DNA from: Octopus bimaculoides
Lineage: Eukaryota
Reading direction: 5' to 3'
Assembly (NCBI RefSeq): GCF_001194135.2
Contig: NC_068992.1
Coordinates: 8,560,751 to 8,624,750 of the forward strand
Length of the DNA stretch: 64,000 bases
Shown here: positions 5,308 through 52,399 of the stretch, one piece after another
Numbering within the stretch: position 1 is the stretch's first letter
Layout of the letters: every line of letters begins with the position of its first letter
Notes under the pieces: model-generated
Database searches by the model: none
Told to the model about the DNA's origin: nothing
Seen by the model: the letters and a program-made list of their open reading frames with translations, nothing else
Made by a program: the position numbers and the translations under genes

Positions 5308-5381
5308 NNNNNNNNNNNNNNNNNNNNNNNNNNNNNNNNNNNNNNNNNNNNNNNNNNNNNNNNNNNNNNNNNCATATAATA

Positions 5382-13837: not shown

Positions 13838-14750
13838 NNNNNNNNNNNNNNNNNNNNNNNNNNNNNNNNNNNNNNNNNNNNNNNNNNNNNNNNNNNNNNN
13901 NNNNNNNNNNNNNNNNNNNNNNNNNNNNNNNNNNNNNNNNNNNNNNNNNNNNNNNNNNNNNNNNNNNNNNNNNNNNNNNNNNNNNNNNNNNNNNNNNNNN
14001 NNNNNNNNNNNNNNNNNNNNNNNNNNNNNNNNNNNNNNNNNNNNNNNNNNNNNNNNNNNNNNNNNNNNNNNNNNNNNNNNNNNNNNNNNNNNNNNNNNNN
14101 NNNNNNNNNNNNNNNNNNNNNNNNNNNNNNNNNNNNNNNNNNNNNNNNNNNNNNNNNNNNNNNNNNNNNNNNNNNNNNNNNNNNNNNNNNNNNNNNNNNN
14201 NNNNNNNNNNNNNNNNNNNNNNNNNNNNNNNNNNNNNNNNNNNNNNNNNNNNNNNNNNNNNNNNNNNNNNNNNNNNNNNNNNNNNNNNNNNNNNNNNNNN
14301 NNNNNNNNNNNNNNNNNNNNNNNNNNNNNNNNNNNNNNNNNNNNNNNNNNNNNNNNNNNNNNNNNNNNNNNNNNNNNNNNNNNNNNNNNNNNNNNNNNNN
14401 NNNNNNNNNNNNNNNNNNNNNNNNNNNNNNNNNNNNNNNNNNNNNNNNNNNNNNNNNNNNNNNNNNNNNNNNNNNNNNNNNNNNNNNNNNNNNNNNNNNN
14501 NNNNNNNNNNNNNNNNNNNNNNNNNNNNNNNNNNNNNNNNNNNNNNNNNNNNNNNNNNNNNNNNNNNNNNNNNNNNNNNNNNNNNNNNNNNNNNNNNNNN
14601 NNNNNNNNNNNNNNNNNNNNNNNNNNNNNNNNNNNNNNNNNNNNNNNNNNNNNNNNNNNNNNNNNNNNNNNNNNNNNNNNNNNNNNNNNNNNNNNNNNNN
14701 NNNNNNNNNNNNNNNNNNNNNNNNNNNNNNNNNNNNNNNNNNNNNNNNNN
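13838..14750. other. Assembly gap (largest). Others: 5308-5372, 10329-10338, 15627-15821, 17361-17633, 46308-46788, 49095-49214, 51668-51712, 55169-55178, 61586-61679
   Basis: N runs. Confidence 1.
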
Positions 14751-15871
14751 TATATATATATATATATATGAAGGAATTTTGTGAAACAACTTATTCAAAT
14801 GATTGAATGATTTTAATTTACTCAAATGCATTTCTTTGAATAATCTTAATTTACTGAAAAGTATTTCTTTTGCATAATGTTAATTTAGTAAAATAGATTT
14901 CTTAAAATAATTATAATTGTCTCAAAAGTATTGCTTTGAATATCCTTCAGTTGAGGTTACATTTTATCTGTCACTCAGTTTAACACCACCACCTTGCGGT
15001 CTATAGTAGACTAAATACACTGTTGCAAACATTTGAACCAAATCTCCATTTTGAATGTAACTGCCTTCCATCTTCAGCAGTCTCAGCAGCTCTTAATATT
15101 ACAGGCACAGCCCTTCCTCTTCATCCGATGTATTAAAAATAGAAGAAAAAAGATATTTAAAAGTATATTTTTCAATAATTTCAATTTATGCAACTGATTT
15201 CTTTAATTGGTCTTAATATCATTAAATGTTTTTCTTTAACACACAAACGTATTTCTTGGAATAATCTTACACTCAAATTCATTCTTTGATTCCCAAGACT
15301 GTGTTAATAAACCACTGAATAACATTGATTAACTTTTGTACTGAAAGTTTTGTAAGCCAGTTTTGAAAATTCAGGACATTTGATTTGCTAAGAAATAATC
15401 CACTTTATTGTTAAATACCTGAAGATCCAGTGTATCTACAGATGAAACTCATATGAATAAGAGGTTGACTTGACCAAAATAAAATATCAGTAATCTCTAG
15501 CATGGTACAGAGTAATTTTTCCAACTTTAAATCCTAAATGTGTGTGTGTGTGTATGTATGCATATATGTATGTATGTATGTATATCATCATCATCATCAT
15601 CATCGTTTAACGATGATGATGATGATNNNNNNNNNNNNNNNNNNNNNNNNNNNNNNNNNNNNNNNNNNNNNNNNNNNNNNNNNNNNNNNNNNNNNNNNNN
15701 NNNNNNNNNNNNNNNNNNNNNNNNNNNNNNNNNNNNNNNNNNNNNNNNNNNNNNNNNNNNNNNNNNNNNNNNNNNNNNNNNNNNNNNNNNNNNNNNNNNN
15801 NNNNNNNNNNNNNNNNNNNNNCTTTGAATATATCACATGACATAAGTGCCACCAAAGCACCTGTTGGAAAA

Positions 15872-16099: not shown

Positions 16100-17666
16100 G
16101 TAACTATCAATAGACGTAAAGTGTTTGTAAAGAATGTATAAGTTAACTAGTGGGACAGAGTATGTTTTGTGTCTTTTACAATTTGTTTATTAAGCAAGCT
16201 ATTCCCTAATAATAACTGGAGGCATTTAAAAAAAAAATGTTGAAGATTGGATCCATTGGAGTGTTGTTGATTAACATATTGGGAATGCTTAACAAGTGGA
16301 AGGTACCTCTATTGAGCTGAGGGAACCTTTGTGTAATTACTCAATGTAGTGGAAATAACAGGCAAATATGCCCCAAACTTCAGTCTCTTGTCTTATTAAC
16401 AAAAGGGATACATTAGATTGTGTGGTACTGGATGCATTACCTGAGAGTAAAAAGTGGGGCTGGTTATAGCTGGAATGCTTTGGATTGTTAGTCTACTTGA
16501 ACAGAGCTGACTTGGGGTTAAACTAGAGCAACAGTGATAGTGGGATGATATAGGTAATAATTGTAATTGATTGTTCTTTCATATTTTATAATTTATATGG
16601 TTAATTCATTAAGCTGAAGGCTTTATGCATTCAATTATTTTAGCTAGAATAAGAAAATAAATACTGTTATGGGTTACTCTATATTTTTGTAGAATGTAAA
16701 TTTATTATTCTTATACAAAAATGTCGTTGACAGGGCCTTTGAAGTTTTGGTCAGTTAAGCTATTGTCAATTTGATGATGGTTTAACTAGCTGAAACTTCG
16801 AATTTACTGTCAACAACGCTCCTGTATAAAAATAAGTTATTTTAAATATGTATTTTCAACTCTTTTCTTTTGTTTATTCATTGTATATTTTGCAATTATT
16901 ATTTTTCTCTGTAGTTAAATTGTTATTTAAAACGCACACATACATACATTTGTGCACAGAGAAGAAGCATATAGTTTCATGCACACACTTAAACCAGCCA
17001 AACACAAGTTAACAAGGAAGCCTTTACATGGTCGTTTAATATGCTAAAAATAACAGTCAAATCTCCCTCAAAACCATCATACCATCTAAAAAAAGGACAT
17101 GTTGGATAAATGTAATCAAGAAAACATAAAAAAAAAGAGTTGTCATAACTGGAACACCACTGACCACCGATCTATTTAATGAAATGTTGACCCAAAACAA
17201 CAGCAACAGTGAAACCGCTGTGCAGTCCTTCAGCCTATAAGAAATAGCAGCCAAATTTCTCTTTCAAATCACACTCTGGTACTCTATAACTTTCAGTGGG
17301 GTAAAACATTAAAAAAAAAAATGAATAGAAAGTTATTTCCCTTAGGCTTTCCTAAGGGAANNNNNNNNNNNNNNNNNNNNNNNNNNNNNNNNNNNNNNNN
17401 NNNNNNNNNNNNNNNNNNNNNNNNNNNNNNNNNNNNNNNNNNNNNNNNNNNNNNNNNNNNNNNNNNNNNNNNNNNNNNNNNNNNNNNNNNNNNNNNNNNN
17501 NNNNNNNNNNNNNNNNNNNNNNNNNNNNNNNNNNNNNNNNNNNNNNNNNNNNNNNNNNNNNNNNNNNNNNNNNNNNNNNNNNNNNNNNNNNNNNNNNNNN
17601 NNNNNNNNNNNNNNNNNNNNNNNNNNNNNNNNNTGATACATATTTCTTTTCATTATTAATAATCAG

Positions 17667-18828: not shown

Positions 18829-21339
18829 AGAGGCCGTTAAAATAATAATAGAAGGAGCAGTAAGTGGAAGACTAAGGTTTGCAATCATTTGGTTTTGTAG
18901 GGGAATGATTTAGTGAAGGATATTTGATGCAGTACTATCTTTGAATAGTTTTTACAGAGATAATTAACATCATATAAAATATTTTACATGAATTAATACA
19001 TTCTATCACATTTAAGTAAAACATATTTTCATTGGTATGATTAAATAAATATTTTAGTATTGAATAAATTTCGCAAATGTCATTTACACACCAAAGAACT
19101 ATATAAAAATAATTTAATGAATGAGCAGTTATAAATTGAAAATCATTTACTTTCAAAGCCATGGTTAAGTGTGCAAGACGAATTAGTTATTCCATTGTAC
19201 ATTTGCTTTAGCATTATCTGTAAATCATTAAAGTAAAATCATTGCTTTTCAGTCGGACAAAAAATTTCAGAATTGATAATTCCTAATTTATCATGAAAAT
19301 AAATGAAAATACAATTAATCTGCAGAGTTTAATTATATAGTGACAATTAAAATCAAAGTTCTTTATTATAAATATAATATTGATTTCTAGCATAGGCACC
19401 ACAAGGTCTCAGTAGGTTATATTGACTCCAGTACATGACTAGTATTTTATTGACCTCAGAAGAATAGAAGGCAAAGTTGATCCTGGTAGAATGTGAACTC
19501 AAAACATAAATAGTTTTCGTCCACCCATCTCCATCAATTAAAAATATATCAGTGAAATAAAAATTTAAGCCACAACTAAATCTAAGCTATTGCTAGTTAT
19601 CTCTTAATAAACACAAATAAATCTCCTATTGATACTATTTATCTCATAATATTGATTCATATCAACTGGCGCAGGGCCACACATTTTTGTAAGGAAGGGG
19701 TAGGGGGTGACAAATTGAACCTAGTACTTTACCACCACTTTATTTTATCATCCCACCTCCATCACAGACGGATGAAAAGTAAAGTGATTTTTTTTTACTT
19801 CAGGATATAAAGGGACATAACTAAATACTGCCTAGGCATTTTCTCAGCTCTCTTACAATCCACTATTCTCCTCCTTTACACAACAATAATTATACAGGAA
19901 ATATATGCAATATATATATATATATTGCATGTTCATATGTACATCATATATTACATCAACCTTATTTTCACAAGCCTGAAAGGATGAAAGTTAAAGCTAA
20001 CTGGCAGAATTTAAACTCAGAACATAAAGGCAGACAAACTGCCACTAAGCTTTTCACCTAGTGTGCTAATGATTCTAGAAATTTGTCACCTTCACTGAGT
20101 TATATATTAACAAGAGTAGTAAATGGACATGCAGTATTAAAGTTTTGTTGCCAAAGTAAGGTAAATGGAAGTAGAGCCAAATGGAGACATGGCATCTCCT
20201 GCACAAAATCTGCATCCACTGAAACTGACTCTGTACCTGTCAAAACCTGAAATATATTGGTACCAGAGAAATCTGGAGGAAATGTATACCTTGTGAAGAG
20301 AGGAAGAATGCTAGTGAAGAATTTATAAAGGCAGCTGAAGCAATGAAACAATCTAATACTGAACTTATCATAAAAATCAACAGTACAAAGACTATAAAAT
20401 ACTGGTTAGGAACAGGAAGTCAAAATCCAAGAGATGTCTGGGTAGTGATTTGCTTTAGATGTAGCAGGGACATGATAGGACACCACCATTTGGTACAGTC
20501 ACAGGCTTGGAAGAAATCAAATGATAGGAGAGAAAGGCTCAACAAAATCGACCACATCCTACACCTATGCAGTCAATGTCATTGACTCTTCAATGCAAGA
20601 ATTAGTTTACAGAGTCATCAACACCATCACCATAGAGGAAGTTTTCAGCAAAGAAGAAACTAAATTCTTGGATATGAGATAAAGCTGATGACAACAAGTA
20701 AGTAGAGGGTAAGAAACTCAATATTGAGTATTTAGTGCAAACAATATGTATTGAAAAGGAGCAGTGGAATCTCTGTTAGAGTGAGTGAGATCCAAGTTTT
20801 TAGCTAGTGTAGGCACAGGCATGGGTGTAGATGTAGGTGTGGCCGCATGGTAAAAACTTTGCTTCCTAACCACATGGTTTCAGGTTCACTCTCATGGCAT
20901 GGCACCTTGGACAACTGACTTCTACCACAGCCCCAGGCCGACTAAACCTTGTGAGTGTATTTGGTAGATAGAAACTGAAATAAGTATGCATGTGTGTATG
21001 CAGGTGTATATTACTGTCACCTTGGCTTGACATCATGATAGTTGTAAACAAGTTTCACTGTTATGCAAGTGGTGTCCATTTCCAATCTTCCATGAAAACA
21101 TACTGGGTCATGAGGAACTATTTGCTTGGAAATAAGTGAAAGCTGGCAACAGGAAGGCGGCTTGCCATAACGAAATCAGCCTTAACAAATTCCATCTGAC
21201 TTATGCCAGTATGGAAAAGTGGATGTTAAAACGAGGATGATGATGACTAAATGAGCAGGAGAAGGTAATCAGTAACTGCTTGCATGAAATGATGTCAATG
21301 AATTTTACTCAGATGGATTGCTTGACATTGTTGATAGTT

Positions 21340-21620: not shown

Positions 21621-23244
21621 CTGAGAGGGGGAAAGTGGGCAGGCATTAAAACATCAAGGGAGATGACTGAGCTGGTGTTTAGACTAACAGTGGAACATAC
21701 AGGGATATAAAAAGACCATGGGAGAAGAGATACATCTAAATATCAAGATGTGACACATTAATAGGATGTTACAGGATAAAGAGGAATGATATAAGTCATA
21801 AATGTAGACTCATCCTACCTATAATCAGCAGAGAAAACACTAAATGATAATAATGGGGACACACACACACACTCATAGGTACATTTGTGTTATCAGCACT
21901 GTTTTGTCATTGAAGACTTGGTCTTTGAATTCCATTGTTAGATTCTTAGTAATAACATCTGTTCAGATTTTCCTTTAAGGGCAGTCAGACCTCATAGTAT
22001 AAAAATAATTTTTATTTAATGTCAGAATGTGAAGAATAGAATACAGTTGAGAAGTGTCAGCTAATTAACACATATAGACACATATGCATATATATGTACA
22101 TATTCACATACATTTCTATTATCACGTAAGCATTTATATATACATATGAATTCATACACAATATTTATATACATACATTACACACACACACACAGTCACG
22201 TACATATAGACATACACGCAAGTAAACGTATAAAGTAGTTATCATTTAAACTCTGCAAAAAACTATCCACCCCTATGAATTCAAATTCCACCCTTTTCTC
22301 CTTGCTTTCACCTTCTTTCCTTATGAGGGAAGATGTAAGGTTACAGACCTACCTTTACAGTTTTGTATGAAAAGCTTGTCTGACAAAATAGTGACACCGA
22401 AATATGACTCCCCTCTCCCATTGTTGTTTAGTTTGTCTTGGTTGCTAAGAGAGAAGAAACAGTCATTTTCATCTCTGCTATAAAAACAAAAATAAATTTA
22501 AAAAAACAAAATAAAAATTCTGCATTCAGTCACTGCTGTAGAATATACCCTTGCTGTGTTGAAATTGTGAATATATTCTCATTATATTGTATTCGTAAAT
22601 ATATCCATATTATTATTGAAAGAAGCCTTCAAAAGCAGAGATTAATACATTCTATACTATTCAGAGACAAATTAGGTTTCAGAGAAGTGATTGGACAACA
22701 ACTATACTTCATGGAAAGGTGATAACAGACAATGATTTGAGAAGCCCTAACTGAAAAAGAGCTTCTTCCTTTGTTTTTTTGTTTTGAATTTGAACAAATT
22801 ATTTTACTCAGTCTAACAACCAGATGAGAGTCTATTGATACATCCAAGTGTTGGTACATAATTAATTATATGAGAGTGAAATAGCAGAAACTAAAATATA
22901 TGCAAAAGACCCACGCATATAAAATTACAGTTGATATTTCCAACCATCTCAGAGAGAGTTGGAAGCTTGTCACACAAGAAAATCATCACATCTATGTTTG
23001 GTGAGGCACTTGGCTATAATCTAAAGACATTCTGAAACACCAGATATCCTTCTGTTGACTGAAATTATTGGTACAAATAACCTATAGCTCCAGTTACATG
23101 ATGCAAGCTACTAACTGCTTAAGGACATTTCTTAGTTTATCAACTATAGATATTTGACAAGAATGACTTTCAAGTTTGAGGTCTGTTAGAATTACATAGT
23201 TTATATATATTATATATTTGAGCGTGATCATTACCAGTGTTGCC

Positions 23245-23446
23245 TTACTGGCCCTTGTGCCGGTGGCATGTAAAAACACCCACTACACTCTCGGAGTGGT
23301 TGGCGTTAGGAAGGGCATCCAGCTGTAGAAACTCTGCCAGATCAGACTGGAGCCTGGTGCAACCATCTGGTTCGCCAGTCCTCAGTCAAACCGTCCAACC
23401 CATGCTAGCATGGAAAGCGGACGTTAAACGATGATGATGATGATAT
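23245..23446 (+). mobile_element. SINE family C (tail ...CATGCTAGCATGGAAAGCGGACGTTAAACGATGATGATG)
   Basis: Same sequence recurs at 25395-25441, 51443-51577(-) and 62526-62860(-), and degraded at ~21040-21250, 57000-57130 and 59120-59230. The (GAT)n tail is typical of RTE-mobilised elements. Confidence 0.85.
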
Positions 23447-28357: not shown

Positions 28358-29466
28358 TCAACCAAGCTCTTCTTCAGCTTGGCTGAATTCACTATCGTCT
28401 ATAATAGTGGAAAGACGCAACTCTTTGGCATCAACAGCATTTAACACCTGCATGTTGACCAACCGTTGCTCAATATCACGGGTTAGCTTGCCAGTTGAAT
28501 AATCTGACTGCAATTGTTTTAATTGATCTTTTGTCATACAAATATTCATTACAACTAACGTGTCTCTTCGAAGCGCACTCATAACAAGTGTTCCTCGATC
28601 TTGTTCGAAATATTTTATTAGGTTTGTATAGTGTGAGTTTCCAGCACTATCAAAGAGGACATAAAACCTGTGAGCCTTCTCATCCAAAACCTCTCCGTCG
28701 CCACGCCATTCTTCTGCCAATTCAACTTTCCTAGATATCGATCTCCCTTGCTCCAGTGACATGAACATACCTTGTTTAGCAGGGGAAGGCCCAGGGAACA
28801 TACTGTTTTTGCTTGAGGCAATACTATTCGAATCTCTCCTGTAGCCTTGAATCAAAACGGAATTACCAGAGTGTCGACTTTTTAAAGATTCAGGAGAGGA
28901 ATAATGACTTTCATTCAAGGAATTTTTGTAATGAACAATATCAGTAATATTAGGATTCTCATTTCTGTGACTTTTGCTAGACTTTCTGTTCAGATAATAT
29001 TTGCCATTTAGCGATGCCCTTTCCTCATGCCACTTAATGCGAGTAGATGGAGAGCTGGTCACTACATTGGTATATCGTGAAATGTCTGGAGGAGTAACTT
29101 GCTGTGTCCGATCTCGACGATTTGGAACATTATGCTTCTTTTGTTTGGGGTCTTTTTTACGACGGAATAGGCTTGGGAAGCAGATGCACCAGCATCTCTT
29201 CGGTTTGATGATATCGTCATCATCTTCATGACTGTAAGCATACTCTTTGATGAGATGTGGTTGAATATTTGCTCCCTCCTCAGGCGACTCTAATAATGTC
29301 ATATTCTCATAAGAACAGTGACGTCGTCGACTTGGAGAGAAGCTGATTTCGACACTGTGTGTTCCTGTGCTGCTACTAAGGTCTTCAACACTCACTCTAT
29401 CCAAGAGTTCCATTTTTGGAACAAGTGCCTTAACAGCTTCCACCTGGATGCGTATAGCCACTTGAC
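28358..29466 (-). CDS. Coding exon 3 (terminal): disordered linker plus C-terminal TRADD-N-like domain
   Basis: Longest real ORF in the window. Acceptor ttttcaattctAG|GTCAAG at 29467/29466, phase 1 compatible; stop TGA at 28358-28360. The C-terminus TLVVMNICMTKDQLKQLQSDYSTGKLTRDIEQRLV...ELRLSTIIDDSEFSQAEEEL matches the invertebrate TRADD-like N-terminal domain pattern (strand, L..L..DY.sG.L...., LkT.IdE.ef). Judged by eye, not by HMM. Confidence 0.88.
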
Positions 29467-30745
29467 CTAGAATTGAAAACAAAGATAAATATTACAAATT
29501 TAAAAAAAAATTAATTAATGTCTTCAAAAGCATAATTACATTTAAAACAAGGACATAAAACTGATTTCCAACACATAAAAGTTATTTTATTTTCACAATA
29601 CATATACACACACACACACACACAACATTTATAAATGGGTAGATTTGTGGTTAGATTTCACAACTGATGACCTCACAGAAAAGATGTTGAACCATCAAAA
29701 ATGAGTTGTGTAATATTGCACAGTAGACACATCCAACCTAATGTTGATATTAAATTAAATAGTTGAAAATAAAAACAACCTTTTAGAACTGAATAAGTAA
29801 GAAATATAAATCCCATATATATTACTGCTGTCAAAATAGTGACCATATTAGACTGCAATAGTGACCATATATTTTAGGACTTTCACATTGTATATTAGTA
29901 TATACAACTTTCATATCCACCGAAATAAGTATTGCAGAGAAACAGAAAATATCAATTCTATTTTTTGGTGGATAATTAATATCATTATAGCAATGACCAT
30001 GAAATTTAATTACACAGTCAAATGTTTAATGTTTGTTTCTTATAACTTCATATAATTGCATAATTTCTAAAAAAAGAAATTAAATTCTAGTATTCTGAAC
30101 TGAAAACTTAGTGGCAATTTAGTTTTAGCATATTTAAATAAGCAACAAAGGAAAAAGTCACAGAAAAAGTTCAATAAATGACATTAGATAAAATATTTTA
30201 ATCAATATCTTCAATATTTTTTTTCACTTGCATGTGAAAATATAATCTGTGTACAGGTTATGTATAACCAGTGAGTAAGTGATTTAAGCTAATACTTGTT
30301 TATTTGTATTATTTATTATTTATGATGTATAAATGAAATGTAACATTTTCCCTCTGTCCAAAATTGTGACTTTTTCCCCAGTGTGACTTCATTTCTGTTC
30401 ACTATTCATTCAGGTCAGCGTGTTATTATAAGTTTCAATTTAATTTCGGTCACACAAACTTAGTGACACTAACAGGTTGCATACTAAGCCAGATGTTACA
30501 TCTTAGTTTAATATTCAATAAACAATGATAATCAATAAAAAAAAAAAAATACAGATTTTACATTGTTGTTTATCAATATTATTTTATACAGTTTGGAAAA
30601 ATTGATTTCTTTTATTAACAAAGCTTACAAGTAATGAATTAAAACTAAACCTGACAACTAAAACTTGGCTGTTTAGGTAAAACACCTACCAACTTAATTT
30701 TTTTTTTTATAATGGTAATATGGAATAAACCAATTATGTACTGAC

Positions 30746-31010
30746 AACGACCATGCTCAAAAGGTGTTTTTTATGTGCCACCTGCATGGGAGCCAGTCAG
30801 GCAGCACTAGCAACGACCATGCTCGAACGTTGTTTTTCACATGCCACCAGCACATGTGCCAGTAAGGCGATGCTGGCAACGATCACGCTCGAATGTGCTT
30901 TTTACGTACCACCAGCACAAGAGCCAGTCAGTGGCCTGGCAACAATCATGCTCGGACGGTGCTTTTAACATTCCAGTGGCACAAGTGCCAATCAGGTGGT
31001 ACTGTCATTA
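30746..31010 (+). repeat. Minisatellite, ~4 diverged units of 63-66 nt, related to the family C internal repeat
   Basis: Repeating aacgaccatgctcgaa...gccaccagcac...gccagtca...ggc. The ORF 30753-30968 shows 22/22/21-aa periodicity. Confidence 0.8.
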
Positions 31011-31541
31011 ATCAATTATTGAAGTCCATTTCAACTGTCATTCAGTGGGTCCATTTCATTTTAAAGATGATTTGTGGGAGTTTGAGCTGCTATTTCTAGC
31101 AAGTTGAAAGATCATGTGGTGGCTCATTGGCTTGGGCTGTTTCTGTATAAATCAATGGTGTTACCCAATACTGGTTACTATACATAACATTAAACAATGG
31201 GTTTCATTGTTATAATATCAGGAGAATCAGTGCAGATTTATTAGCAGATAATTTCCAACAGTACTGCCTGATTGGCACTTGTGCCATTGGAACGCCCGGT
31301 CTGGGAATTGAAACCGCGATCCTATGACCGCGAGTCTGCTACCCTAACCACTGGGCCATTGTGCCTCCACTGTGTGTAGATAAACCACATGTAACAACAA
31401 AAGTAGAGCAGAATATCACTGGAAACATGGAAGTAAATGTATTAAATATACTAAACATGTATTAAACTTGCCACAGCTGACAAACAAATCACTGTCAAGG
31501 AACTGAAGAGTTCTGAATGTAAGTGTTCCATGCTCATGTCA

Positions 31542-31579
<38 letters not shown>

Positions 31580-32615
31580 ATGCGTGAAAGGTCTCTGTCA
31601 AGATTCTACACTAGGCTATTTTATTTACAATCAAGAAATCTGATAAACAAGAACCAAGGACATCGTATAGATTAATGATGTCAACAATAAAATGAGCAAT
31701 GAAGGCCATGGAAAAAAGGCACTGTACAGCCTTGATATAATCACCTTCATCAAATAAGTCAGAAAAACAACTGACACCAGCCAGCATGCAATGGATATAT
31801 CATTTTGAGCTGATTTTTTGCTTACAAGCACTGTTAATAGTCAATGTTAGTAGTCAGCCAAAGCAGATAAAAAGACAGTGATTATTTCATGCTGTAAAAG
31901 TCAGTTATTGTTTTGTGGATAACTAACATCATTAAGGGAATGACTATGAAATTTAATTTCGCAGCGAAAGTGTTAAAAATTATAGTTTAGATATATAATA
32001 AAAATGATTCGAATAAAATATTTCTTTTCTCTTGATAAATTTAGACACAACTTTCTAACTTTCTGGCAAGAAATTTAGGACTTTATGTTTTAAAATGAGT
32101 GAATATTGTTTGTAGACAAGTTTAGTTTAAGCAACTAGAATTTGTTTAAATGAAATTGTCATGAAACACAATTCAGTTCAGTAGGGCAAATCTGATATCT
32201 TAATCTAAATAATAATCTCTAATTATTATGACTAAATTAAGATAATTATCTTTGTTTTTTGGTTTTCATAACTTGTATTTGTGTCAAAGTCTGTTTTTTT
32301 AATTAAAAATGTGAACTTGTGTAGTGAAATATAAGAGCATTTCTCTTGATAGACATGAGATCATATTTTGCTAATGTAATGAAAGGCAGAAGTCTGGATT
32401 ATGCACTCAATCTTTACTTTTATTCTTTTTATTATTTACCCCCCTCTCCCTTCTTTAATTTTTATATTTTTAACATTTAAGAATCGGAATCTTTAAGAAT
32501 TATTTTCAAAATTTCTTCTTTTATTTCATGGTTATTTTCAATAGTCAGCTCACAAATGGAAATATTGGACAATTTAACTCCTAGCAGTGTTGTACAATTT
32601 TTCAGACACCTCTCG

Positions 32616-32644
<29 letters not shown>

Positions 32645-32647
<3 letters not shown>

Positions 32648-32880
32648 TATACCTGGATGTTAATCTGAACCTTGTTACTAGCCTATACAGTATGTATTAT
32701 AAACCCAACAATAATTTAAAATATATCAACTTTCATAGTAACCATCCTGAAGCGATCACAAGAACTTTGGTTGATAATATTTTGAGATGGGTTTCTTATT
32801 TATTCTCTAATGAGGAAATCTTTAATAATATTGTTGAATAGACATAATGATGCCCTTAAAAAAAGCAGGGATACTGGAAT
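32645..32880 (+). mobile_element. Penelope-like element RT C-terminal fragment
   Basis: YLDVNLNL...YYKPNNNLKYINFHSNHPEAI...NILRWVSYLFSNEEIFNN...HNDALKKAG matches the PLE FLDV...KP.....YI...SNHP motif. Confidence 0.75.
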
Positions 32881-33747
32881 AGAATTGCATATTGTAATAA
32901 GAATGGGAACTCCAATAAATCTTATTATAGTAATGGAAAATTGGTTGACAATGAAGTGAGTGGATCTAATAGTAGAAATGAATCCAATTGTATATTGGAT
33001 TATACAATTGGATTATATAAAAGTAGTATATATGAATGATCGTATATTTGTATATATATATGTATTTGTATAAATGGCTATATGTTGTTTGTATTTATAT
33101 CTGATGCTATATATATGTCGTTATGCATATGTATGTGTGTGTACAAGTATGTGTATGTATGTCTCTATATTTATATGTATATTTGTTGAACTTTGTTTTA
33201 TAAGTTAAACCATATACTTAATATACTTATATATATATAAATCACAGATTTCAACATGTTACACCTTCATCAGCAGAGACTACATTGTCCAATGTATACT
33301 GCATTTTTTTCAGGTGGAAGAGTGAGTTGTGTGAAGTGCACATGAACTTTAATGGAGAGCCAGTAGCTGACCAGAGATGAAACACAATTGATTCTATGGA
33401 TGAAACATAGCCTTTGGAATAAGGCGTTAGGTATTTACAATACTAAAAATCTGAAAGAAATTCATACAACCATGATGCTAGTCTACTGATAGAGAACAGG
33501 AATAGAGACATTTGCTGAGTAGCAGCATGGCAAGTTTTAACCTTAAACTTCTCTCTCTCTTTCTCTTTCTATGTAATCAATTAATCAATAGAAATCTGTA
33601 AAATACTAATAGCAGGATATTGGAGGGAAAGAAATCTTGGATTATGTGAAACATGCCATGAGTCAGTTGAAGTAGGATATAGAAGATGAAGAAGAAGGAT
33701 AAAGAAGAAGGATAAAGAAGACGAGTGCTTTGAAGTTAGTGGCTTAC

Positions 33748-33774
33748 CTTTATATCGGTCTCTTTGCAAATAAC
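33748..33774 (-). CDS. Coding exon 2: 27-nt symmetric (phase 1-1) microexon encoding GYLQRDRYK
   Basis: Acceptor ttttcacttccttttataattttcAG|G (AG at 33775-33776) and donor AAAG|GTAAGC (GT at 33746-33747). It keeps the frame between exons 1 and 3 with no stop. Confidence 0.75.
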
Positions 33775-34044
33775 CTGAAAATTATAAAAGGAAGTGAAAA
33801 ACGGTTTGATACAACAATTCAGAGAAAATATTCTAACAAGATTTTCTAAGTGCTCAACAATTGTTGTCAATGTTATGACCAGTCAGTGCCTATGGTTAAT
33901 TTCTCAATTGGAAGAAGTTTTACTGGTTGCTTGATCTACAAGAAATAGCAGCTAAATCACTCTCAAATCTCATCTTATCATCTTCAGAAAAGAAAGAGTA
34001 TATTAACTAATGTAATCTTAGATAATCCTTTTGATACCAATCTG

Positions 34045-34404
34045 CCAGGTTCAGTCCCACTGCAAGGCACCTTGGGCAAGTGTCTTCTACTATAGCCTCG
34101 GGCCGACCAAAGCCTTGTGAGTGGATTTGGTAGACGGAAACTGAAAGAAGCCCGTCGTATATATGTATATATATGTGTGTGTGTGTGTGTATGTGTTTGT
34201 GTGTCTGTATGTGTCCCCCTAGCATTGCTTGACAACCGATGCTGATGTGTTTATGTCCCCGTAACTTAGCGGTTCGGCAAAAAAAGACTGATAGAATAAG
34301 TACTAGGCTTACAAAGAATAAGTCCTGGGGTCGATTTGCTCGACTAAAGGCGGTGCTCCAGCATGGCCGCAGTCAAATGACTGAAACAAGTAAAAGAGTA
34401 AAAT
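34045..34404 (+). mobile_element. SINE family B, young 5'-truncated copy inside intron 1 of the CARD gene (antisense)
   Basis: GGTTCAGTCCC B-box, ACCTTGGGCAAGTGTCTTCTACTATAGCCTCGGGCC CORE-like segment, internal (TA)/(TG) microsatellite and GTAAAAGAG tail. CpGs intact. Confidence 0.92.
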
Positions 34405-34434
34405 AAATAAATGTAAGAAAGGTATCCCGTTTAC

Positions 34435-34723
34435 CTGTACCATGGACGGGTTTAATTCTTTTGGTGTAGTCTAGAGAGCTTGCTAAGTCAAGCTGCCCGG
34501 ATTGTCGTAGAGCATTAATAAAGAGGGCCATCGCATTGCTACTGTGAAGGCCCTCCAAGTGCTGCAGCAGAGCTTGGTTCCGCAGAGGCATATCTTTTTC
34601 TTCGTTAATATCATTGTAGGTTTCTTTACTGATGACACCATGCTGGAGCAGGTAATCAAACACTGGCTCAGAGTCAAGGTTTTCTATAAGATCTTCGCGA
34701 TTACTGAGCTTTTCAGCCACCAT
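34435..34723 (-). CDS. Coding exon 1 (CARD, aa 1-96) of a 474-aa CARD / TRADD-N-like death-fold adaptor
   Basis: ATG at 34723 follows an acceptor (AG at 34737-34738, ~90-nt poly-U tract) and two in-frame TGA. Donor ACAG|GTAAAC at 34435/34434, phase 1. The peptide LSNREDLIENLDSEPVFDYLLQHGVIS...LFINALRQSGQLDLASSL matches the six-helix CARD pattern seen in caspase-2/CRADD/APAF1-type CARDs. Confidence 0.88.
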
Positions 34724-34736
34724 AGCCTTTCATCAC

Positions 34737-34782
34737 CTACATTTTAGAAAGAAGAAAAGAAAAAAAAAAACAAAAACAAAAA

Positions 34783-34834
<52 letters not shown>

Positions 34835-34837
34835 AAA
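34737..34837 (-). promoter_or_regulatory. 3' splice site with very long polypyrimidine (poly-U) tract preceding the CARD exon
   Basis: The plus-strand A-rich run 34748-34837 reads as poly-T on the gene strand, followed by ...ctaaaatgtAG|GTGATG. Confidence 0.75.
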
Positions 34838-40101: not shown

Positions 40102-40327
40102 CAGGAGTGGCTGTGTGGTAAGTAGCTTGCTTACCAACCACATGGTTCTGGGTTCATTCCCACTGCGTGGCACCTTAGGCAAGTGTCTTCTACTATAGCC
40201 TCGGGCTGACCAAAGCCTTGTGAGTGGATTTGGTTGACGGAAACTGAAAGAAGCCCGTCGTATATATATGTATATATATATGTATGTATTTGTTTGTATG
40301 TCTGTGTTTGTCCCCCCCCCCCAACAT
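40102..40327 (+). mobile_element. SINE family B copy (3' truncated)
   Basis: Head CAGGAGTGGCTGTGTGGTAAGTAGC... near-identical to the 34045 and 49231 copies. Confidence 0.9.
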
Positions 40328-46307: not shown

Positions 46308-48240
46308 NNNNNNNNNNNNNNNNNNNNNNNNNNNNNNNNNNNNNNNNNNNNNNNNNNNNNNNNNNNNNNNNNNNNNNNNNNNNNNNNNNNNNNNNNNNNN
46401 NNNNNNNNNNNNNNNNNNNNNNNNNNNNNNNNNNNNNNNNNNNNNNNNNNNNNNNNNNNNNNNNNNNNNNNNNNNNNNNNNNNNNNNNNNNNNNNNNNNN
46501 NNNNNNNNNNNNNNNNNNNNNNNNNNNNNNNNNNNNNNNNNNNNNNNNNNNNNNNNNNNNNNNNNNNNNNNNNNNNNNNNNNNNNNNNNNNNNNNNNNNN
46601 NNNNNNNNNNNNNNNNNNNNNNNNNNNNNNNNNNNNNNNNNNNNNNNNNNNNNNNNNNNNNNNNNNNNNNNNNNNNNNNNNNNNNNNNNNNNNNNNNNNN
46701 NNNNNNNNNNNNNNNNNNNNNNNNNNNNNNNNNNNNNNNNNNNNNNNNNNNNNNNNNNNNNNNNNNNNNNNNNNNNNNNNNNNNNNNNCTTACCTACCTA
46801 CCTATCATGTGTGCATCTATCATATATTTTTATACATAACAATTCTTTATGCCAACCAATCAAGGGTTGAATTAACCATTTTAATTATTTCCTTAAGTAG
46901 CAGTTTTGGTTAGTGCTAATAGAAAATAAATTAGTTAATGAGGAATAGGATTAAAAAAACCCAGAAATAACATGATTTCAAAAATAAGTTCAAGGTTACA
47001 TTTATTTTTATGTGTTAGAGAAGGGTCCTTATTTTGAAAGGGTTAGGACCTTTGAGATAGGCAGAAGGAAAACAGTCCTCCTAAGACTGGAGATCAAGCC
47101 TGAATCCTTGCAATTGATTTGACTCTATTAGATATCCGTGGTGTTAAAAAGGGTACTAGTCTACCATTTGTAAGAGCCTTTGTCTCTTGTTTGGCCTCTT
47201 GTTTTAAAACATTGATAGGATGAAACAAATGCAGAGTTAGCTTCAATCAAATGATAGGAAGAAAAGAGAAAAGAAACACAGAAAGCTTTGTTTTTTTTCA
47301 AGTAAAAAATTGAAATTAAAATAGAAAATACAAATGAATTACAGCAAAATATCTATTAATTTTCAATATATTCTCATAGATTTAAGTGTGAATCATAGAT
47401 TTTTTTTTGTCATTAGAGATCAACTCTCTTTAGATGATGTGTCTTCATAACACATGGTTCATTGATGTGAGGGGACTTAGAGACATTGATGTTTTAATTT
47501 TGTCTCCTCAAAAACCTACTTAGAATATGGACAATATACTTTTAAAACAAGAGGTCAAACAAGAGACGAAGGCTCCTACAAATGTGTGGTGGTGGTGGTT
47601 ATTATGATGGTCATAGTGGGGGTTATTCAGCCTGTGAGATATAACAGCCAAGTCACTCCCAAATTACACTCTAGTGCTTTGAGAAAGGAGGGAGACATTT
47701 GATAATGGAGTCCTAGATATATGATGCTTGAAAAAAATAACTACTGGATGGTCATAGCTGGAATACCTAAGATTTGATGGCTGATTTGGAATCAAAAAGA
47801 TAACAGGTTGAGGGAGCAAATAATATTTATATCAAAAACAGAATGTAACAGTTTGTCTGAGTTCCACAAAGAAATTCATAACTTTAAATAAACTAAAAAG
47901 ACATGGAAAAAATGTTTAACATGTACTGAATTGTTTAAATTTTATTATTCAGTTCAAACTTTAAAAGAAACAAGTTCCAAGGTATTCAAACTACAAATTT
48001 TAACAGTTATCAACCCTGAATAAAATTGGTACAAGAGGACAAATTTTAGAGGAGGTCTGTAGTTAATTATATTGATTCCAGATTGAGCTTTCTAGGAAGC
48101 CTGCAGAACATTGAAGGCAAAGACATCAATGACATTCCAGGTGTCCAAGGTTCAATTCTCAAATTAATCCAAACTGCTGGTTCTGTCATTCACAGCCAAA
48201 TAAGAATGAAATTACAATCTGACTAAAAACCTATTCTCAC

Positions 48241-48650: not shown

Positions 48651-49230
48651 CTACAAATAGAAAAACAAAAGGAAAATATATTTGCTGCAAACTATTTCGA
48701 CATTTCAATAAAAATATATATAAATTTCTTTCTGCATGTACATGTTAATAACGTAGGCATTATAGGGGAAAAAACAATAGTGTGATTTCAAGGAAATTTG
48801 GCTACTATTTCTAGCACCTTGAATGGGTACAAAATTCCCTCAGTGGGTTGTATATGTGTGTGTATATATATATATCCTTTTACTTGCTTCAGTTGGGTCG
48901 TTGATGACCTCTTTCTAGCATATTGGATGTCCACCTAGTGGTCATCCCTTCTTATACGCATGTAATACAATTTTTCTGAATTATCAGATTTTTTTATATG
49001 CTAGACCACTGGTTTTAAATTGAAATTAATATTCAATTTATCACCCTCAGTATATAAATAATATAATATAATATAATACAATATAATATGTATANNNNNN
49101 NNNNNNNNNNNNNNNNNNNNNNNNNNNNNNNNNNNNNNNNNNNNNNNNNNNNNNNNNNNNNNNNNNNNNNNNNNNNNNNNNNNNNNNNNNNNNNNNNNNN
49201 NNNNNNNNNNNNNNATATCTAATATATATC

Positions 49231-49600
49231 TGTGGTAAGTAGCTTGCTTACCAACCACATGGTTCTGGGTTCAGTCCCACTATGTGGCACCTTGGGCAAG
49301 TGTCTTCTACTATAGTCTCGGGCCGACCAAAGCCTCGTGAGTGGATTTGGTAGACGGAAACTGAAAGAAGCCCATCGTATATATATATATGTATGTGTGT
49401 TTGTGTGTCTGTGTTTGTCCCCCTACCATCGCTTGACAACCGATGCTGGTGTGTTTACGTCCCCATAACTTAGCGGTTTGGCAAAAAGAGACCGATAGAA
49501 TAAGTACTAGGCTGACAAAGAATAAGTCCTGGGGTCGATTTTCTCAACTAAAGGCGGTGCTCCAGCATGGCCAGTCAAATGATTGAAACGAGTAAAAAAG
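49231..49600 (+). mobile_element. SINE family B copy
   Basis: Near full-length match to the 34045 copy. Older or partial copies also at ~9990-10170, 20840-21060, 26520-26790, 37100-37270(-), 52100-52240(-), 54340-54720, 58140-58470 and 60350-60680(-). Confidence 0.9.
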
Positions 49601-52399
49601 AGTATATATATATATCTAATATAATATATATATATACATATATGTACACAGAATATGTATATATATGTGTCTGTGTGTGTGTACACACACACACACACAC
49701 ACATAAGGGAGGTGTATATTAATGTTGCCTTATTTAAATTAATATTAACTCCTACTTCTTTTTCTACAACAGATTGTTTTATCGCACCAGCTGTGTGAAC
49801 AAGAATACCTTCCACGTCAGCACTCAACACTGCAGGAGTTGTGAGTCAGGTGTGAGCACATTCTTCTGATCATTATCAAAAAACCCCACAGCAACTACAA
49901 CAAGAAAACCATTGTGTGGTCATTGCATGTGCTAGAATTAGCAGCCAAATAGCCCTGAAGTTACCCCTTACTATTTTAGAAAAGAATACATTAAATAATG
50001 TGGCCCTATATGTCTTACAAAAGGATGAGATAATGAAGCAAGGCTAATTCGAGACTAAACGACTATAACTGCACTCAACTTGCAAGAAATAATCACCAGG
50101 GTATAGAATGTTCAGGAAAATGAAGGAATTATATTAGCTAAAATGATAGAGGTTTGTTCAAAGCATGGCTTGCTTGAAGCTTAAAAAAACAATCACAAGG
50201 AACCTTAGCAATCTTCTACAGTGGTTCTCAACCAGGATCCATATAAAATTTTGTTGTTAAAATATATATGCAATAAATTGGATATACTTCTACAGTGCAC
50301 ACAATATTTTTTTTTTTCAATTTTTTTTTTATTTGTCCCCAACACCATCAGTTGTCAAGCGATGGTGGGGGGGGGGGGGGGACAAACACATGAAAGTTTA
50401 ATGGATAGTTTTAATTTAAGTCTTTTAGTATTTAAATAAATCATGCCTGGCCCAAATATTCTACCTGTTTTAGGGCCAGAGAGTTACTCAATCAAAGCTG
50501 ACAAGCTACTAAACAAACAATAACAAGCATCTTCTTCTCAAGTTTGTCTTTGTCACCATCAGCACAATAGACTGTAGGTGTTGTTATGTAGCTGAAATGC
50601 TGATGTGCAAGATGAGTGGTGTATGTATGATGAAAACAGGAGGGGAGATGGAGAGGATTCTGTTCAGCCATTTTCCTCACAATCGAGAAGCAACAGTACA
50701 AAAAGACTGGGTAATATCTCTGGTATGGGCCTTGTAGTTATATTTTTTACAGAGAAGCAAATAGATATATGGACGTTGTGTTAGAAAACACAAATACTGT
50801 GATATATATACCAAGAGAGAAAACTCTCATATAGTAATTTGGTGATTTTGGCCTAATTTGGCCTTGTCAATGGTAGATACCTCAGCACTGGAAATAGCAA
50901 TATACATAGAAATACAGAGCGAAAACAGGTACTGATGTCGCTAAGAGCCAGTGGCCTTATTAAAAAATAGAGTGACAGAGGCTCCATTTATTTTTTAATA
51001 ACTACATAAAGTTTATCTTACTATTTTGGAGTAATTAAAGAAGTCAAGATAAATGATAAAATAAGATAATGTAATCTATGGATATATTAAAGGATTGAAT
51101 ATATTCACAGTCAAAGAGAGAAAATATAATTAAACTTAAGGGAAAAAGGCAAACAGTTTGAGACTAATTGTCTGCTATAGTACACCAGCACATTCCTGCA
51201 CCTGCACTCCATTATTAACTACAAGCCAACCAGGAAGCTCTATGTAATCACCTGACTTGCTAGAAATAGTAGCTAAATTTTTCTCAAATCATTCATTAAT
51301 GTGTAAATGACATTTTGGATAATGTTACTCCTTCATATATAAAATGATAGTATGGATTACATGAGAGTCTCTTTTAGAAGTAGCCAAATCTCCCTCAAAT
51401 CAACTCCACTATTTTTTTTAAAAAAAGGAAGGAACACACTGAGGACTGGTGAACCAGGTGGCTGCACCAGGCTCCAGTCTGATTTGGCAGAGTTTCTACA
51501 GCTGGATGCCCTTCCTAACGCCAACCACTCAAAGAGTGTAGTGGGTGCGTTTACGTGCCACTGGCATGGAGGCCAGTATATATATATATAAATTATTTAA
51601 AATTATAATACAGGGTATCTAAGAGATACCGCCACGCTGAAAAATAGCAGTCAAATCCTGCTATTTTNNNNNNNNNNNNNNNNNNNNNNNNNNNNNNNNN
51701 NNNNNNNNNNNNGCTATTTTTCAGCGTGGCGGTATCTCTTAGATACCCTGTATTATAATTTTAAATAATTATTACCTTTGATGGTTTTTATTCCCATGCT
51801 GGCCACTTGATAAGATCAATATTTTAAATATCAATCTTATCCTTATTTATATATATATATATATTATAACGAAGGTGGCTATATGCAAAATAAAACCATA
51901 AACAAAAAATTCAATTGCCACTAATTGTGAGTAAGAGTGACATATTGCTAGAGTTAAAAACCCCTCAAAGCTGCAAGAGAACATTTTCATATACTAACAG
52001 GAGAGATAACTGCCCCACAGTGAAGCTAGATTATTATACTCGGCTAGTTTTGTTTGAAAATTACAAACTCATCAGCAGTGACTACTCAATCAATACACAT
52101 ACATACATATATACATGCGCACAAGCTTCTTTCAGTCCATCAAATCCACTCGTAAGGTCTTGGTTAGCTCAGGGCTATAGTAGAAGACAAGTGCTCAAGG
52201 TGGGACTAAGCCCAGAACCATGTGGTTGGGTAGCGAATATCTTGAAATAAAGAAAAAAAACACAAAACAAAAAACAGGTGTTCTTCAGAGACAACCTGCC
52301 TTGAGTCTTTTAAGTTCTATGGATGAAGCAGGTCTCCAGTCAAGCAGCAGGTAACATGGGTATAGTATATAGTTGATAGATGAGTTAAGTAACATGCTC

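Follow-up and report, generated by a model that had tools for sequence, protein, structure and literature searches.

A conserved three-exon gene of Octopus bimaculoides encodes a CARD protein with a TRADD-N-like C-terminal domain

The window, that is, the whole stretch of 64,000 nucleotides of Octopus bimaculoides DNA analysed here, contains on its minus strand a three-exon gene whose spliced coding sequence of 1425 nt is in frame and gives a protein of 474 aa. The features of the gene and of its product are the following:

34435..34723, minus strand: exon 1, residues 1-96 and the first base of codon 97, encoding the CARD
34472..34705, minus strand: CARD domain, residues 7-84 (Pfam PF00619)
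33748..33774, minus strand: exon 2, a mini-exon of 27 nt with AG/GT flanks
28358..29466, minus strand: exon 3, residue 106 (last two bases) to residue 474 and the TGA stop
29417..29464, minus strand: conserved beta segment, residues 107-122 (QVAIRIQVEAVKALVP), an AlphaFold strand directly after the CARD
28736..29416, minus strand: disordered region, residues 123-349 (pLDDT and composition)
29135..29194, minus strand: conserved Cys cluster and polybasic run, of putative function
28361..28735, minus strand: TRADD-N-like (DEDD2-clade-like) alpha/beta domain, residues 350-474 (AlphaFold and profiles)

Exon 1 starts with the ATG at 34723 and is limited by a GT donor (34434-34433), the mini-exon supplies the rest of G97, then YLQRDRYK and the start of G106, and exon 3 follows the AG acceptor located before 29466 and closes with the TGA stop at 28360-28358. 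The product is identical to the RefSeq entry "uncharacterized protein LOC106880179 [Octopus bimaculoides]" (100% identity over 100% of the length), whose locus lies on CM046612.1 of GCA_001194135.2, and the three-exon model given in a preliminary description of this DNA proved exact in its coordinates. Exon 2 is part of a strongly conserved segment (RIKPxxGxGYxxKxRxKGQV) that is kept in all the orthologues and, in a related cephalopod, also lies within the uninterrupted ORF of transcript-like contigs. The orthologue of this animal, of 475 aa and 83% identical, is encoded without introns on Logan contigs of 2.8-3.0 kb, which occur in 83 index blocks of the collection and come from many sequencing runs. 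These contigs are most simply understood as transcripts. In their alignment to the window, the matches to exons 1 and 3 are separated by only about 24 nt, a gap that fits the 27-nt mini-exon, and the contigs join the same exons as the octopus model. In addition, the last-exon ORFs of many relatives likewise start at GQV and, as a consequence, the position of this intron is conserved. LOC106880179 is a real, conserved and expressed three-exon gene and not a chance ORF.

The N-terminal domain of the protein is a bona fide CARD of the caspase-9/Apaf-1 type. It matched Pfam PF00619 with an E value of 9.1e-11 and 42.1 bits, well above the cut-off of 23.9, AlphaFold predicted six helices for it (pLDDT 82-91), and Foldseek gave target-normalised TM-scores of 0.70-0.79 against the CARDs of Apaf-1 and caspase-9; these analyses agree with the CARD originally noticed at this end of the protein. 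With the family profile of the domain, the best E values corresponded to the CARDs of caspase-9 (1.4e-8) and Apaf-1 (6e-7), those of MDA5, from the RIG-I/MDA5 group (1.7e-3), and BCL10 (0.05) being weaker. Its mean column identity among orthologues was 62%, and the C-terminal domain and the Cys cluster were as strongly conserved as the CARD. As previously indicated, no catalytic domain was found by the Pfam scan of the protein.

Both folded domains are separated by a disordered region, which accounts for the approximately 250 low-complexity residues mentioned in the preliminary description. Residues 123-348 showed AlphaFold pLDDT values below 50, and residues 123-349 (227 aa), in which S, R, K, E, P and N abound, can only poorly be aligned across orthologues, short motifs excepted. 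This region contains the sequence C197-W-C199-I-C201-FPSLF, behind which lies a polybasic run, R207-K216 (RRKKDPKQKK). C199 and C201 were invariant in 37 sequences; in molluscs, annelids and one brachiopod, C201 was invariant and C197 and C199 were conserved in at least 90%. The hydrophobic stretch at the cluster is below the length of a transmembrane helix. As judged by sequence pattern and conservation, the cluster and the polybasic run are a probable S-acylation and membrane-binding site, in line with the lipid-anchor motif suggested earlier, or alternatively a nuclear localisation signal.

AlphaFold predicted a confident alpha/beta fold for residues 355-474 (pLDDT 80-95), with W359, G363, YFEQxRGTLV (391-400) and NICMT (413-417) as hallmarks and the element order b-a(kinked)-b-b-a(kinked)-a-b-a. 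In the literature, TRADD-N is described as an RRM-like sandwich whose helices are kinked, and the b-a-b-b-a-b order with broken helices agrees with this. Nevertheless, direct comparisons with TRADD were negative. The Pfam TRADD_N and TRADD-like_N profiles gave no match at E<=10 in the octopus protein and 20 mollusc orthologues, nor directly in annelid and brachiopod members; the PDB sequence-profile search with the domain did not find TRADD (1F2H/1F3V); Foldseek retrieved neither 1F2H nor 1F3V with the full-length model or with that of the isolated domain, which is incomplete; and hhalign against TRADD 1F3V yielded a probability of 0.2%. For this domain, the HMMER and AlphaFold/Foldseek comparisons proposed in the preliminary description thus gave no direct match. 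The relation emerged indirectly, at the level of the superfamily. A search of 1.84 billion proteins with the profile of the domain gave 158 matches at E<=1e-3, and 53 of the 64 weaker matches scanned carry Pfam TRADD-like_N (PF20694), with HMMER E values of PF20694-carrying proteins down to 7e-8; in one protein, P0114, the PF20694 match (228-278) falls inside the match to our profile (193-298). Likewise, hhalign of the family against TRADD-like_N reached 99.4% (E 3.8e-21) over 107 columns, with agreement of the hydrophobic and Gly pattern, and intermediate members present YFEQDRG together with a GS turn. The "uS" turn, a motif described as strongly conserved in TRADD-N, is only loosely kept: in octopus it reads D408-T409, and elsewhere various small residues take its place. 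The library search, the profile-profile alignment and the published label of the Lingula members discussed below indicate that this domain is homologous to the TRADD-N superfamily and nearest to its DEDD2-type clade (Pfam TRADD-like_N). Therefore, the earlier call of a TRADD-N-like C-terminus stands in essence, for the superfamily but not for classical TRADD.

The segment directly following the CARD may also belong to this fold. Residues 107-122 form a strand in the full-length AlphaFold model (E107-122, block-mean pLDDT 79-92), their GQVxIxIxV motif is kept family-wide, and the isolated-domain model, which lacks them, loses strands beta-1 and beta-4. The hhalign alignment did not reach this strand and gave no statistical support to its identity with beta-1. 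On the AlphaFold secondary structure, residues 107-122 are probably strand beta-1 and would complete the TRADD-N-like sheet. If so, the long, putatively acylated region would be an inserted loop and no mere spacer, and the completed sheet would place both folded modules side by side.

Full-length orthologues with 33-40% identity were found in gastropods, bivalves, a chiton, Owenia, Lamellibrachia, Helobdella and Lingula, with one orthologue per species among the named matches. As regards the lophotrochozoan survey suggested earlier, members of the family occur in molluscs, annelids and brachiopods. A computational catalogue already includes proteins of this type from related animals, and the architecture is on record. 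In the part of the source available to us, Kaur, Iyer, Burroughs and Aravind (2021; PMC8195603, eLife 10:e70394, Figure 4-source data 1) list invertebrate CARD+TRADD-N (DEDD2-clade) proteins with the same two-domain plan as the octopus protein, including Lingula anatina XP_023931052.1, XP_023931977.1 and XP_023931978.1, labelled "CARD+TRADDN-DEDD2". These entries belong to the family of the octopus gene. Like its product, they have a CARD, the strand RIxPxxGxxxxxKxRxKGQV, a CxCxC cluster and a domain with YxEQxRGxL..ICM.., and XP_023931977.1 (P0090) matched our C-terminal profile with an E value of 3.8e-21. Within that part of the census, neither the octopus gene nor any of its mollusc orthologues was found, the only octopus genes being LOC106877111, LOC106881630, LOC106880279 and LOC106875131; its mollusc CARD+TRADDN-DEDD2 entries have different identifiers (e.g., LOTGIDRAFT_234111 vs LOTGIDRAFT_164618) and are, as a consequence, other genes. 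No mention of the conserved Cys cluster or the post-CARD strand was found there either, and our literature search did not find experiments on any family member. The impression that no named gene has this architecture must therefore be abandoned, given the plan of DEDD/DEDD2 and the proteins tabulated in PMC8195603.

The preliminary description regarded the protein as an inverted counterpart of TRADD that would, at a membrane, link CARD filaments with TRAF ubiquitin ligases. Its C-terminal domain would bind the TRAF MATH/TRAF-C domain, and molluscs would thereby have a MAVS/TRADD-like path to NF-kB. TRADD-N binds the TRAF2 MATH domain in the 1F3V structure, and membership of the TRADD-N superfamily and the probable membrane anchor favour this proposal. 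Vertebrate TRADD is also a non-catalytic adaptor combining TRADD-N-superfamily and death-fold domains, with the RRM-like b-a-b-b-a-b order that is predicted for the octopus domain too; however, its domains are in the reverse order and its death-fold partner is a Death domain instead of a CARD. Moreover, the octopus domain belongs with the DEDD2-type clade, could be matched to TRADD directly neither by sequence nor by structure, and does not conserve, in its family, the turn aligned with TRADD Ser67 ("uS"), a TRAF2 contact. Classical TRADD is confined to vertebrates, and TRAF binding is documented for its clade only, so that the "inverted TRADD" notion is not sustained. A [PSAT]x[QE]E TRAF2-type consensus, the only conserved one, is kept in position at the extreme C-terminus (A469-EEE in octopus, AxQE in 21 of 32 orthologues), but it sits in the predicted last helix (H463-473) and not in an extended peptide, and it is so short that about one per protein is expected by chance.

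Vertebrate MAVS and oyster CgMAVS resemble the octopus protein in the N-terminal CARD, the long disordered middle, the membrane tether (putative in octopus) and the lack of a catalytic domain. MAVS uses a transmembrane helix at its C-terminus and binds TRAFs through peptide motifs. CgMAVS, which consists of CARD, Death domain and transmembrane helix, signals via TRAF6 (PMC5557890), and a CARD-to-TRAF logic therefore exists in molluscs, which is in favour of the bridging. However, the octopus protein has no transmembrane helix and ends in a folded TRADD-N-like domain, no conserved TRAF6 motif was found in the motif search of the orthologues, and its CARD is nearer to caspase-9 and Apaf-1 (1e-8 to 1e-6) than to MDA5 or BCL10. 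The bridging to TRAFs, a conjecture when first put forward, seems to us unlikely.

Less probable still is a regulator like DEDD/DEDD2 (FLAME-3) in which a CARD replaces the DED and the polybasic run is a nuclear or nucleolar signal and not a membrane patch, the protein shuttling to the nucleus and modulating caspases or transcription in apoptosis. DEDD and DEDD2 reside in the nucleus or nucleolus. They share with the octopus protein an N-terminal death-fold, a basic low-complexity linker, a C-terminal TRADD-N of the same clade and the absence of enzymatic domains, and RRKKDPKQKK is compatible with a monopartite nuclear localisation signal. Nevertheless, their N-terminal domain is a DED, while that of octopus scores as a CARD, and octopus already has a separate DED-bearing DEDD-like gene (LOC106881630). 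In addition, DEDD/DEDD2 lack the Cys-cluster anchor, whereas in the octopus family the basic run always stands directly after an invariant CxCxC cluster with hydrophobic surroundings, a pattern typical of acylated membrane anchors and superfluous for a nuclear signal.

We give similarly little credit to a decoy like ARC/NOL3, ICEBERG or the CARD-only proteins, which would trap the CARD of an initiator caspase or Apaf-1-like protein at a membrane and so keep apoptosis in check; its C-terminal domain would serve only for regulation or oligomerisation. The absence of catalytic or effector domains and the kinship of the CARD agree with it, as does the presence of one orthologue per species with a strongly conserved CARD, which suggests a fixed housekeeping partner and not an arms-race receptor. 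However, the present data do not distinguish activation from inhibition, and the fact that the C-terminal domain is just as conserved, like the Cys cluster, points beyond passive sequestration. Finally, that the C-terminal domain is a new fold linked to TRADD-N by a compositional or helical artefact, as the lack of direct Pfam, PDB-sequence or Foldseek matches and the poor hhalign result with TRADD itself might suggest, is highly improbable in view of the PF20694-carrying matches, the hhalign alignment to TRADD-like_N, the intermediates and the independent published assignment of the Lingula members.

We consider instead, with some reserve, that LOC106880179 is probably a non-catalytic death-fold adaptor in which a CARD, a disordered middle with the Cys cluster and polybasic run, and a TRADD-N-superfamily domain would couple two assemblies. 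For the octopus protein we infer the acylation, the membrane location, the partners and the pathway as follows. The Cys cluster would be S-acylated and, with the basic patch, would tether the protein to a membrane. The CARD would recruit a CARD-bearing partner through homotypic assembly, most likely an initiator caspase or an Apaf-1/NLR-like sensor, and the TRADD-N-like module would dock a second one, which could be another protein with a TRADD-N or death-fold domain, or possibly the MATH domain of a TRAF. In this way the protein may couple both assemblies in a pathway of apoptosis or innate immunity.

LOC106880179 is encoded on the minus strand of the window, and its coding sequence is distributed in three exons:

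34723-34435, minus strand: exon 1, with the ATG at 34723 and a GT donor
33774-33748, minus strand: exon 2, a mini-exon of 27 nt with AG and GT flanks
29466-28358, minus strand: exon 3, with an AG acceptor and a TGA stop

Once spliced, they give an in-frame CDS of 1425 nt encoding a protein of 474 aa, whose translation is 100% identical along its full length to the NCBI entry 'uncharacterized protein LOC106880179 [Octopus bimaculoides]'; the locus corresponds to chromosome record CM046612.1 of GCA_001194135.2. The three-exon ORF proposed in the preliminary description was borne out, since all the splice sites and the stop codon were present and the product was identical to that of RefSeq. The transcript evidence comes from contigs of a cephalopod orthologue. 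This orthologue (475 aa, 83% identical) was found as a single uninterrupted ORF on Logan contigs of 2.8-3.0 kb and is listed in 83 blocks of the Logan index. On these contigs, the stretches matching exons 1 and 3 of the window are separated by about 24 nt, which is the expected size of the mini-exon and, therefore, the contigs are most simply spliced transcripts. As far as can be judged from these contigs spanning both exons, the CARD exon is joined to the acceptor at 29466, as had been anticipated. In addition, the last-exon ORFs of many relatives start at 'GQV' and, as a consequence, the intron position is conserved.

Within the 64-kb window, no neighbouring gene hinting at function was detected, and neither another convincing coding gene nor a tRNA was found. 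The window's ORF list includes spurious long 'X' ORFs, which come from the following N runs (assembly gaps) of the window:

5308-5372, N run
13838-14750, N run
15627-15821, N run
17361-17633, N run
46308-46788, N run
49095-49214, N run
51668-51712, N run
61586-61679, N run

Several repeats were also observed. At 34046-34219, intron 1 carries a dispersed, SINE-like element that is about 170-200 nt long and has a tail rich in (TG)n; other copies are located at 49231-49423, 40103-40316, 10010-10163, 20835-20984 and 60542-60670 (75-90% identity among copies). Intron 2 contains at 30741-30996 a tandem array of a 66-nt unit (3.9 copies, 71-76% matches), which is probably a piece of a dispersed repeat; related copies were identified at 62713-62861 and 23216-23278. 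Finally, an 83-nt homopolymer-like run (34755-34837; poly-A on the plus strand and poly-T on the gene strand) lies upstream of the gene, beginning 32 nt from the ATG.

The N-terminal CARD was confirmed both by sequence and by predicted structure. Pfam PF00619 matched residues 7-84 with 42.1 bits, above its curated cut-off of 23.9 (E 9.1e-11), and the AlphaFold2 model, built with a 37-sequence alignment, showed a confident six-helix bundle (helices 10-15, 18-27, 33-40, 45-58, 62-74 and 78-84; pLDDT 82-91). Foldseek comparison of this bundle with the CARDs of Apaf-1 and caspase-9 gave target-normalised TM-scores of 0.70-0.79 and rmsd values of 1.4-3.1 A. The family CARD profile was also compared with known CARD proteins.

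Matches of the family CARD profile to known CARD proteins
Caspase-9 CARD: E 1.4e-8
Apaf-1 CARD: E 6e-7
CARD8: E 1e-4
CED-3: E 1e-4
RAIDD: E 1e-4
MDA5: E 1.7e-3
BCL10: E 0.05

Because this ranking places caspase-9 and Apaf-1 first, the CARD of LOC106880179 is, by its profile affinities, of the apoptosome type and not of the RLR/MAVS or CARD9/BCL10 type.

Full-length orthologues with 28-42% identity and the same order of motifs were found in cephalopods, gastropods, bivalves and a chiton, in the annelids Owenia, Lamellibrachia and Helobdella, and in the brachiopod Lingula, with apparently one orthologue per species among the named matches. All of them are designated 'uncharacterized', 'hypothetical', 'unnamed protein product' or 'CARD domain-containing'. 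Among the matches with organism names, no orthologue was found outside Lophotrochozoa, and word-indexed searches left the named taxa unchanged when either a multi-phylum alignment or the Lingula protein served as the query. Three gastropod-like relatives from the profile search (P0053, P0056 and P0075; 1476-2001 aa) have over 1000 additional low-complexity residues, with the whole CARD-to-TRADD-N-like unit C-terminal to them. Of these relatives, P0075 is similar to the Elysia entry P0039; the extensions reflect either merged gene models or a fusion specific to the lineage.

The identity of the C-terminal domain was established at the profile level. The Pfam scan of the octopus C-terminus and linker and of 20 mollusc orthologues at E<=10 gave no TRADD_N or TRADD-like_N match, and for the C-termini no family at all; nor was PF20694 (TRADD-like_N) matched directly by the annelid and brachiopod members at E<=1. 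Against PDB sequences, the family C-domain profile produced chance matches only (RPC1, Dad1, E>0.4) and the TRADD-like (PF20694-type) set zero matches. The structural comparison with TRADD-N put forward in the preliminary description did not succeed either, as Foldseek against PDB returned CARD matches only for the full-length model and nothing significant for the isolated C-domain model (best, de novo ferredoxin-fold designs, probability <=0.44), with no TRADD structure in either case. With hhalign, the C-domain alignment matched TRADD 1F3V with a probability of 0.2%, the TRADD query having been checked as identical to the PDB chain; the PF20694-type profile fell on TRADD in the expected register, with GS on Ser67, but with P=0.019 over just 39 columns.

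On the other hand, when a library of 1.84 billion representative proteins was searched with a profile built from 21 mollusc C-domains, 158 matches were obtained at E<=1e-3, 77 of which were at E<=1e-10. The strong matches were members of the same family from other animals and the weaker ones (E 6.8e-8 to 6e-4) small invertebrate proteins, 53 of 64 of which contain PF20694. This holds for P0114, P0117 and P0148 (E 6.8e-8, 1.1e-6 and 2e-4, respectively), and in the Acropora protein P0114 PF20694 is at 228-278, inside the profile-matched stretch (193-298). Direct hhalign comparison of the family C-domains with the PF20694-type set yielded 99.4% probability (E 3.8e-21, 107 columns), the block GS-LIITV-C..L..LW.DY.SG.L being paired with xx-LVVxNICMT..Q...L..DY..G.L. 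Thus, the claim of a TRADD-N-like C-terminus stands on its homology to PF20694 proteins and not on direct Pfam, PDB or TRADD matches.

In the full-length AlphaFold model the C-domain runs as strand, broken helix, strand, strand, broken helix, short helix, strand and helix (strands 355-360, 399-405, 410-415 and 454-460; helices 364-375/383-395 and 418-430/432-441). TRADD-N has been described in the literature as an RRM-like b-a-b-b-a-b sandwich whose helices are kinked, and the predicted order agrees with this. The position aligned to the 'uS' motif (a tiny residue then Ser/Cys at the beta2-beta3 turn) is D408-T409 in octopus; the orthologues have S, T, G, A, C or K as the second residue, and GS occurs at this turn in some divergent YFEQ-family members. 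The turn would thus be loosely kept, with a small residue retained and the strict motif not. In addition, three Lingula proteins (XP_023931052.1, XP_023931977.1 and XP_023931978.1) with every hallmark motif of the family are labelled 'CARD+TRADDN-DEDD2' in a published census (Kaur et al., 2021, eLife 10:e70394, Figure 4-source data 1; PMC8195603). XP_023931977.1 is P0090 of our profile search, with E 3.8e-21 to the C-domain profile. From the profile search, the hhalign result, the order of elements and this label, we conclude that the C-domain is a divergent member of the TRADD-N superfamily and that its closest group is the DEDD2-type clade. In LOC106880179 it is fused to a death-fold domain, the N-terminal CARD of the same polypeptide.

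Between both domains, the low-complexity middle region of the preliminary description was recovered as a 227-residue stretch (123-349) enriched in S, R, K, E, P and N, with AlphaFold2 pLDDT below 50 over residues 123-348. It includes a family-conserved cluster, C197-W-C199-x-C201-F-P, followed by the polybasic run RRKKDPKQKK (207-216). C199 and C201 are invariant in the 37-sequence alignment; when molluscs, annelids and one brachiopod are compared, C201 never varies and conservation is 90% or more at C197 and C199. The hydrophobic stretch by this cluster, the sole one in the protein, has about 10 residues and is too short as a membrane span. The most economical reading of the cluster and the basic run is an S-acylated membrane anchor; of the lipid-anchor linker first described, the conserved Cys cluster next to a polybasic run was found and the anchor role is inferred. 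Alternatively, the same region could act as a nuclear localisation signal. The linker also contains, at residues 157-161 (window 29300-29314, minus strand), an S-[YF]-E-N-M motif conserved in molluscs and followed by an acidic run likewise conserved in them. The octopus version, SYENM, has a YxNM pattern resembling the sites by which CD28 and DAP10 bind SH2 domains; a chiton carries F at the [YF] position, and the annelid and brachiopod members lack the motif. A KENxxP box is present in the linker of non-cephalopod molluscs and absent from octopus.

The segment immediately after the CARD, RIKPxxGxGYxxKxRxKGQVxIxIxV, reaches across the mini-exon into the first part of exon 3, and its conservation equals that of the folded domains. 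AlphaFold2 places a confident strand at residues 107-122 (block-mean pLDDT 79-92). Since the C-domain modelled in isolation, without this segment, loses two strands (beta-1 and beta-4), the models suggest the hypothesis that the post-CARD strand completes the TRADD-N sheet, the 227-residue region being an inserted loop and no spacer. When residues 104-124 were joined to the C-domain, the hhalign alignment did not reach the strand, and statistical support for its equivalence to beta-1 was nil. In such an arrangement, beta-1 would come directly after the CARD and the rest of TRADD-N beyond an S-acylated loop of about 230 residues, which would fix a rigid CARD/TRADD-N unit at the membrane; the unit would nucleate CARD assemblies together with an RLR/NLR-type sensor or an initiator caspase, and TRAFs or the expanded set of TRADD-N effectors would receive the signal. 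It is improbable, in our judgement, that the family is a lophotrochozoan-wide membrane-pinned adaptor built on a split TRADD-N and taking, in spiralians, the functional place of MAVS or TRADD. If it were, the invertebrate TRADD-N expansions would gain a conserved hub.

LOC106880179 has no catalytic domain and combines two interaction modules of the apoptosis/immunity toolkit with a conserved Cys and basic patch. It probably functions as a membrane-tethered adaptor linking a CARD-CARD assembly to a TRADD-N-mediated interaction. Due to the affinities of its CARD, for which homotypic binding or filament formation is putative, the partner would most likely be an initiator caspase or an Apaf-1/NLR-like protein. 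TRAF binding would be possible but is unsupported. In TRADD, Ser67 of the 'uS' motif is a TRAF2 contact, and the equivalent position is not conserved in the family. The motif survey revealed no conserved TRAF6 motif and, in the linker, no conserved TRAF2-type motif. The sole positionally conserved TRAF2-type consensus ([PSAT]x[QE]E) is at the extreme C-terminus, residues 469-472 (window 28367-28378, minus strand), being AEEE in octopus and 'AxQE' in 21/32 orthologues; it lies inside the predicted last helix, is short enough for chance and would be weak evidence. The main alternatives to the adaptor reading are a DEDD2-like nuclear role and a role as decoy or inhibitor.

With respect to known systems, catalogued CARD+TRADD-N (DEDD2-clade) proteins are among the closest, and DEDD and DEDD2 have the same plan with a DED in place of the CARD; Pfam detected in LOC106880179 the CARD only and no DED. 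Classical TRADD was discarded, as its domain order is the reverse, it has a Death domain where the octopus protein has a CARD, and neither PF09034 nor 1F2H/1F3V was matched. The likeness to MAVS is in logic only: MAVS carries TRAF-binding peptide motifs and a transmembrane anchor at its C-terminus, whereas LOC106880179 has a folded C-terminus, a hydrophobic stretch of about 10 residues, no conserved TRAF6 motif and, in the linker, no conserved TRAF2-type motif. Identity with oyster MAVS was ruled out because CgMAVS consists of a CARD, a Death domain and a transmembrane helix (PMC5557890).

The four octopus rows of the census, which are the four genes it counts for the RefSeq octopus assembly, are LOC106877111, LOC106881630, LOC106880279 and LOC106875131 (Kaur et al., 2021; PMC8195603). 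There, LOC106877111 is a second, different CARD+TRADD-N(+CARD) gene, LOC106881630 a separate DED+TRADD-N, DEDD-like gene and LOC106880279 a 'bacterial-like' TRADD-N gene; these three are candidate partners or paralogues of LOC106880179. Among the census rows examined, LOC106880179 and its mollusc orthologues appear to be missing, and a literature search by six orthologue identifiers found no paper naming these genes. Since CARD+TRADD-N (DEDD2-clade) proteins are catalogued in the census and DEDD/DEDD2 share the plan, the statement that no named gene has this architecture was not right. LOC106880179 joins a kind already catalogued, whose members are uncharacterised by experiment, and the finding overturns nothing because the architecture class was already on the computational record.

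The current Pfam models miss this TRADD-N subfamily and, as a consequence, every orthologue is labelled just 'uncharacterized' or 'CARD domain-containing'; extending the TRADD-like_N seed with it would mend the annotation Lophotrochozoa-wide. TRADD-N domains have recently been proposed as ancient adaptor modules common to bacterial conflict systems and to animal apoptosis and immunity. To our knowledge, only that of TRADD and, to a lesser extent, that of DEDD2 have a tested function. The LOC106880179 family is well conserved, joins an apoptosome-type CARD to a TRADD-N-like domain and a probable lipid anchor and, because orthologues are known in oyster, mussel and abalone, offers a tractable way to ask what a non-vertebrate TRADD-N domain binds.
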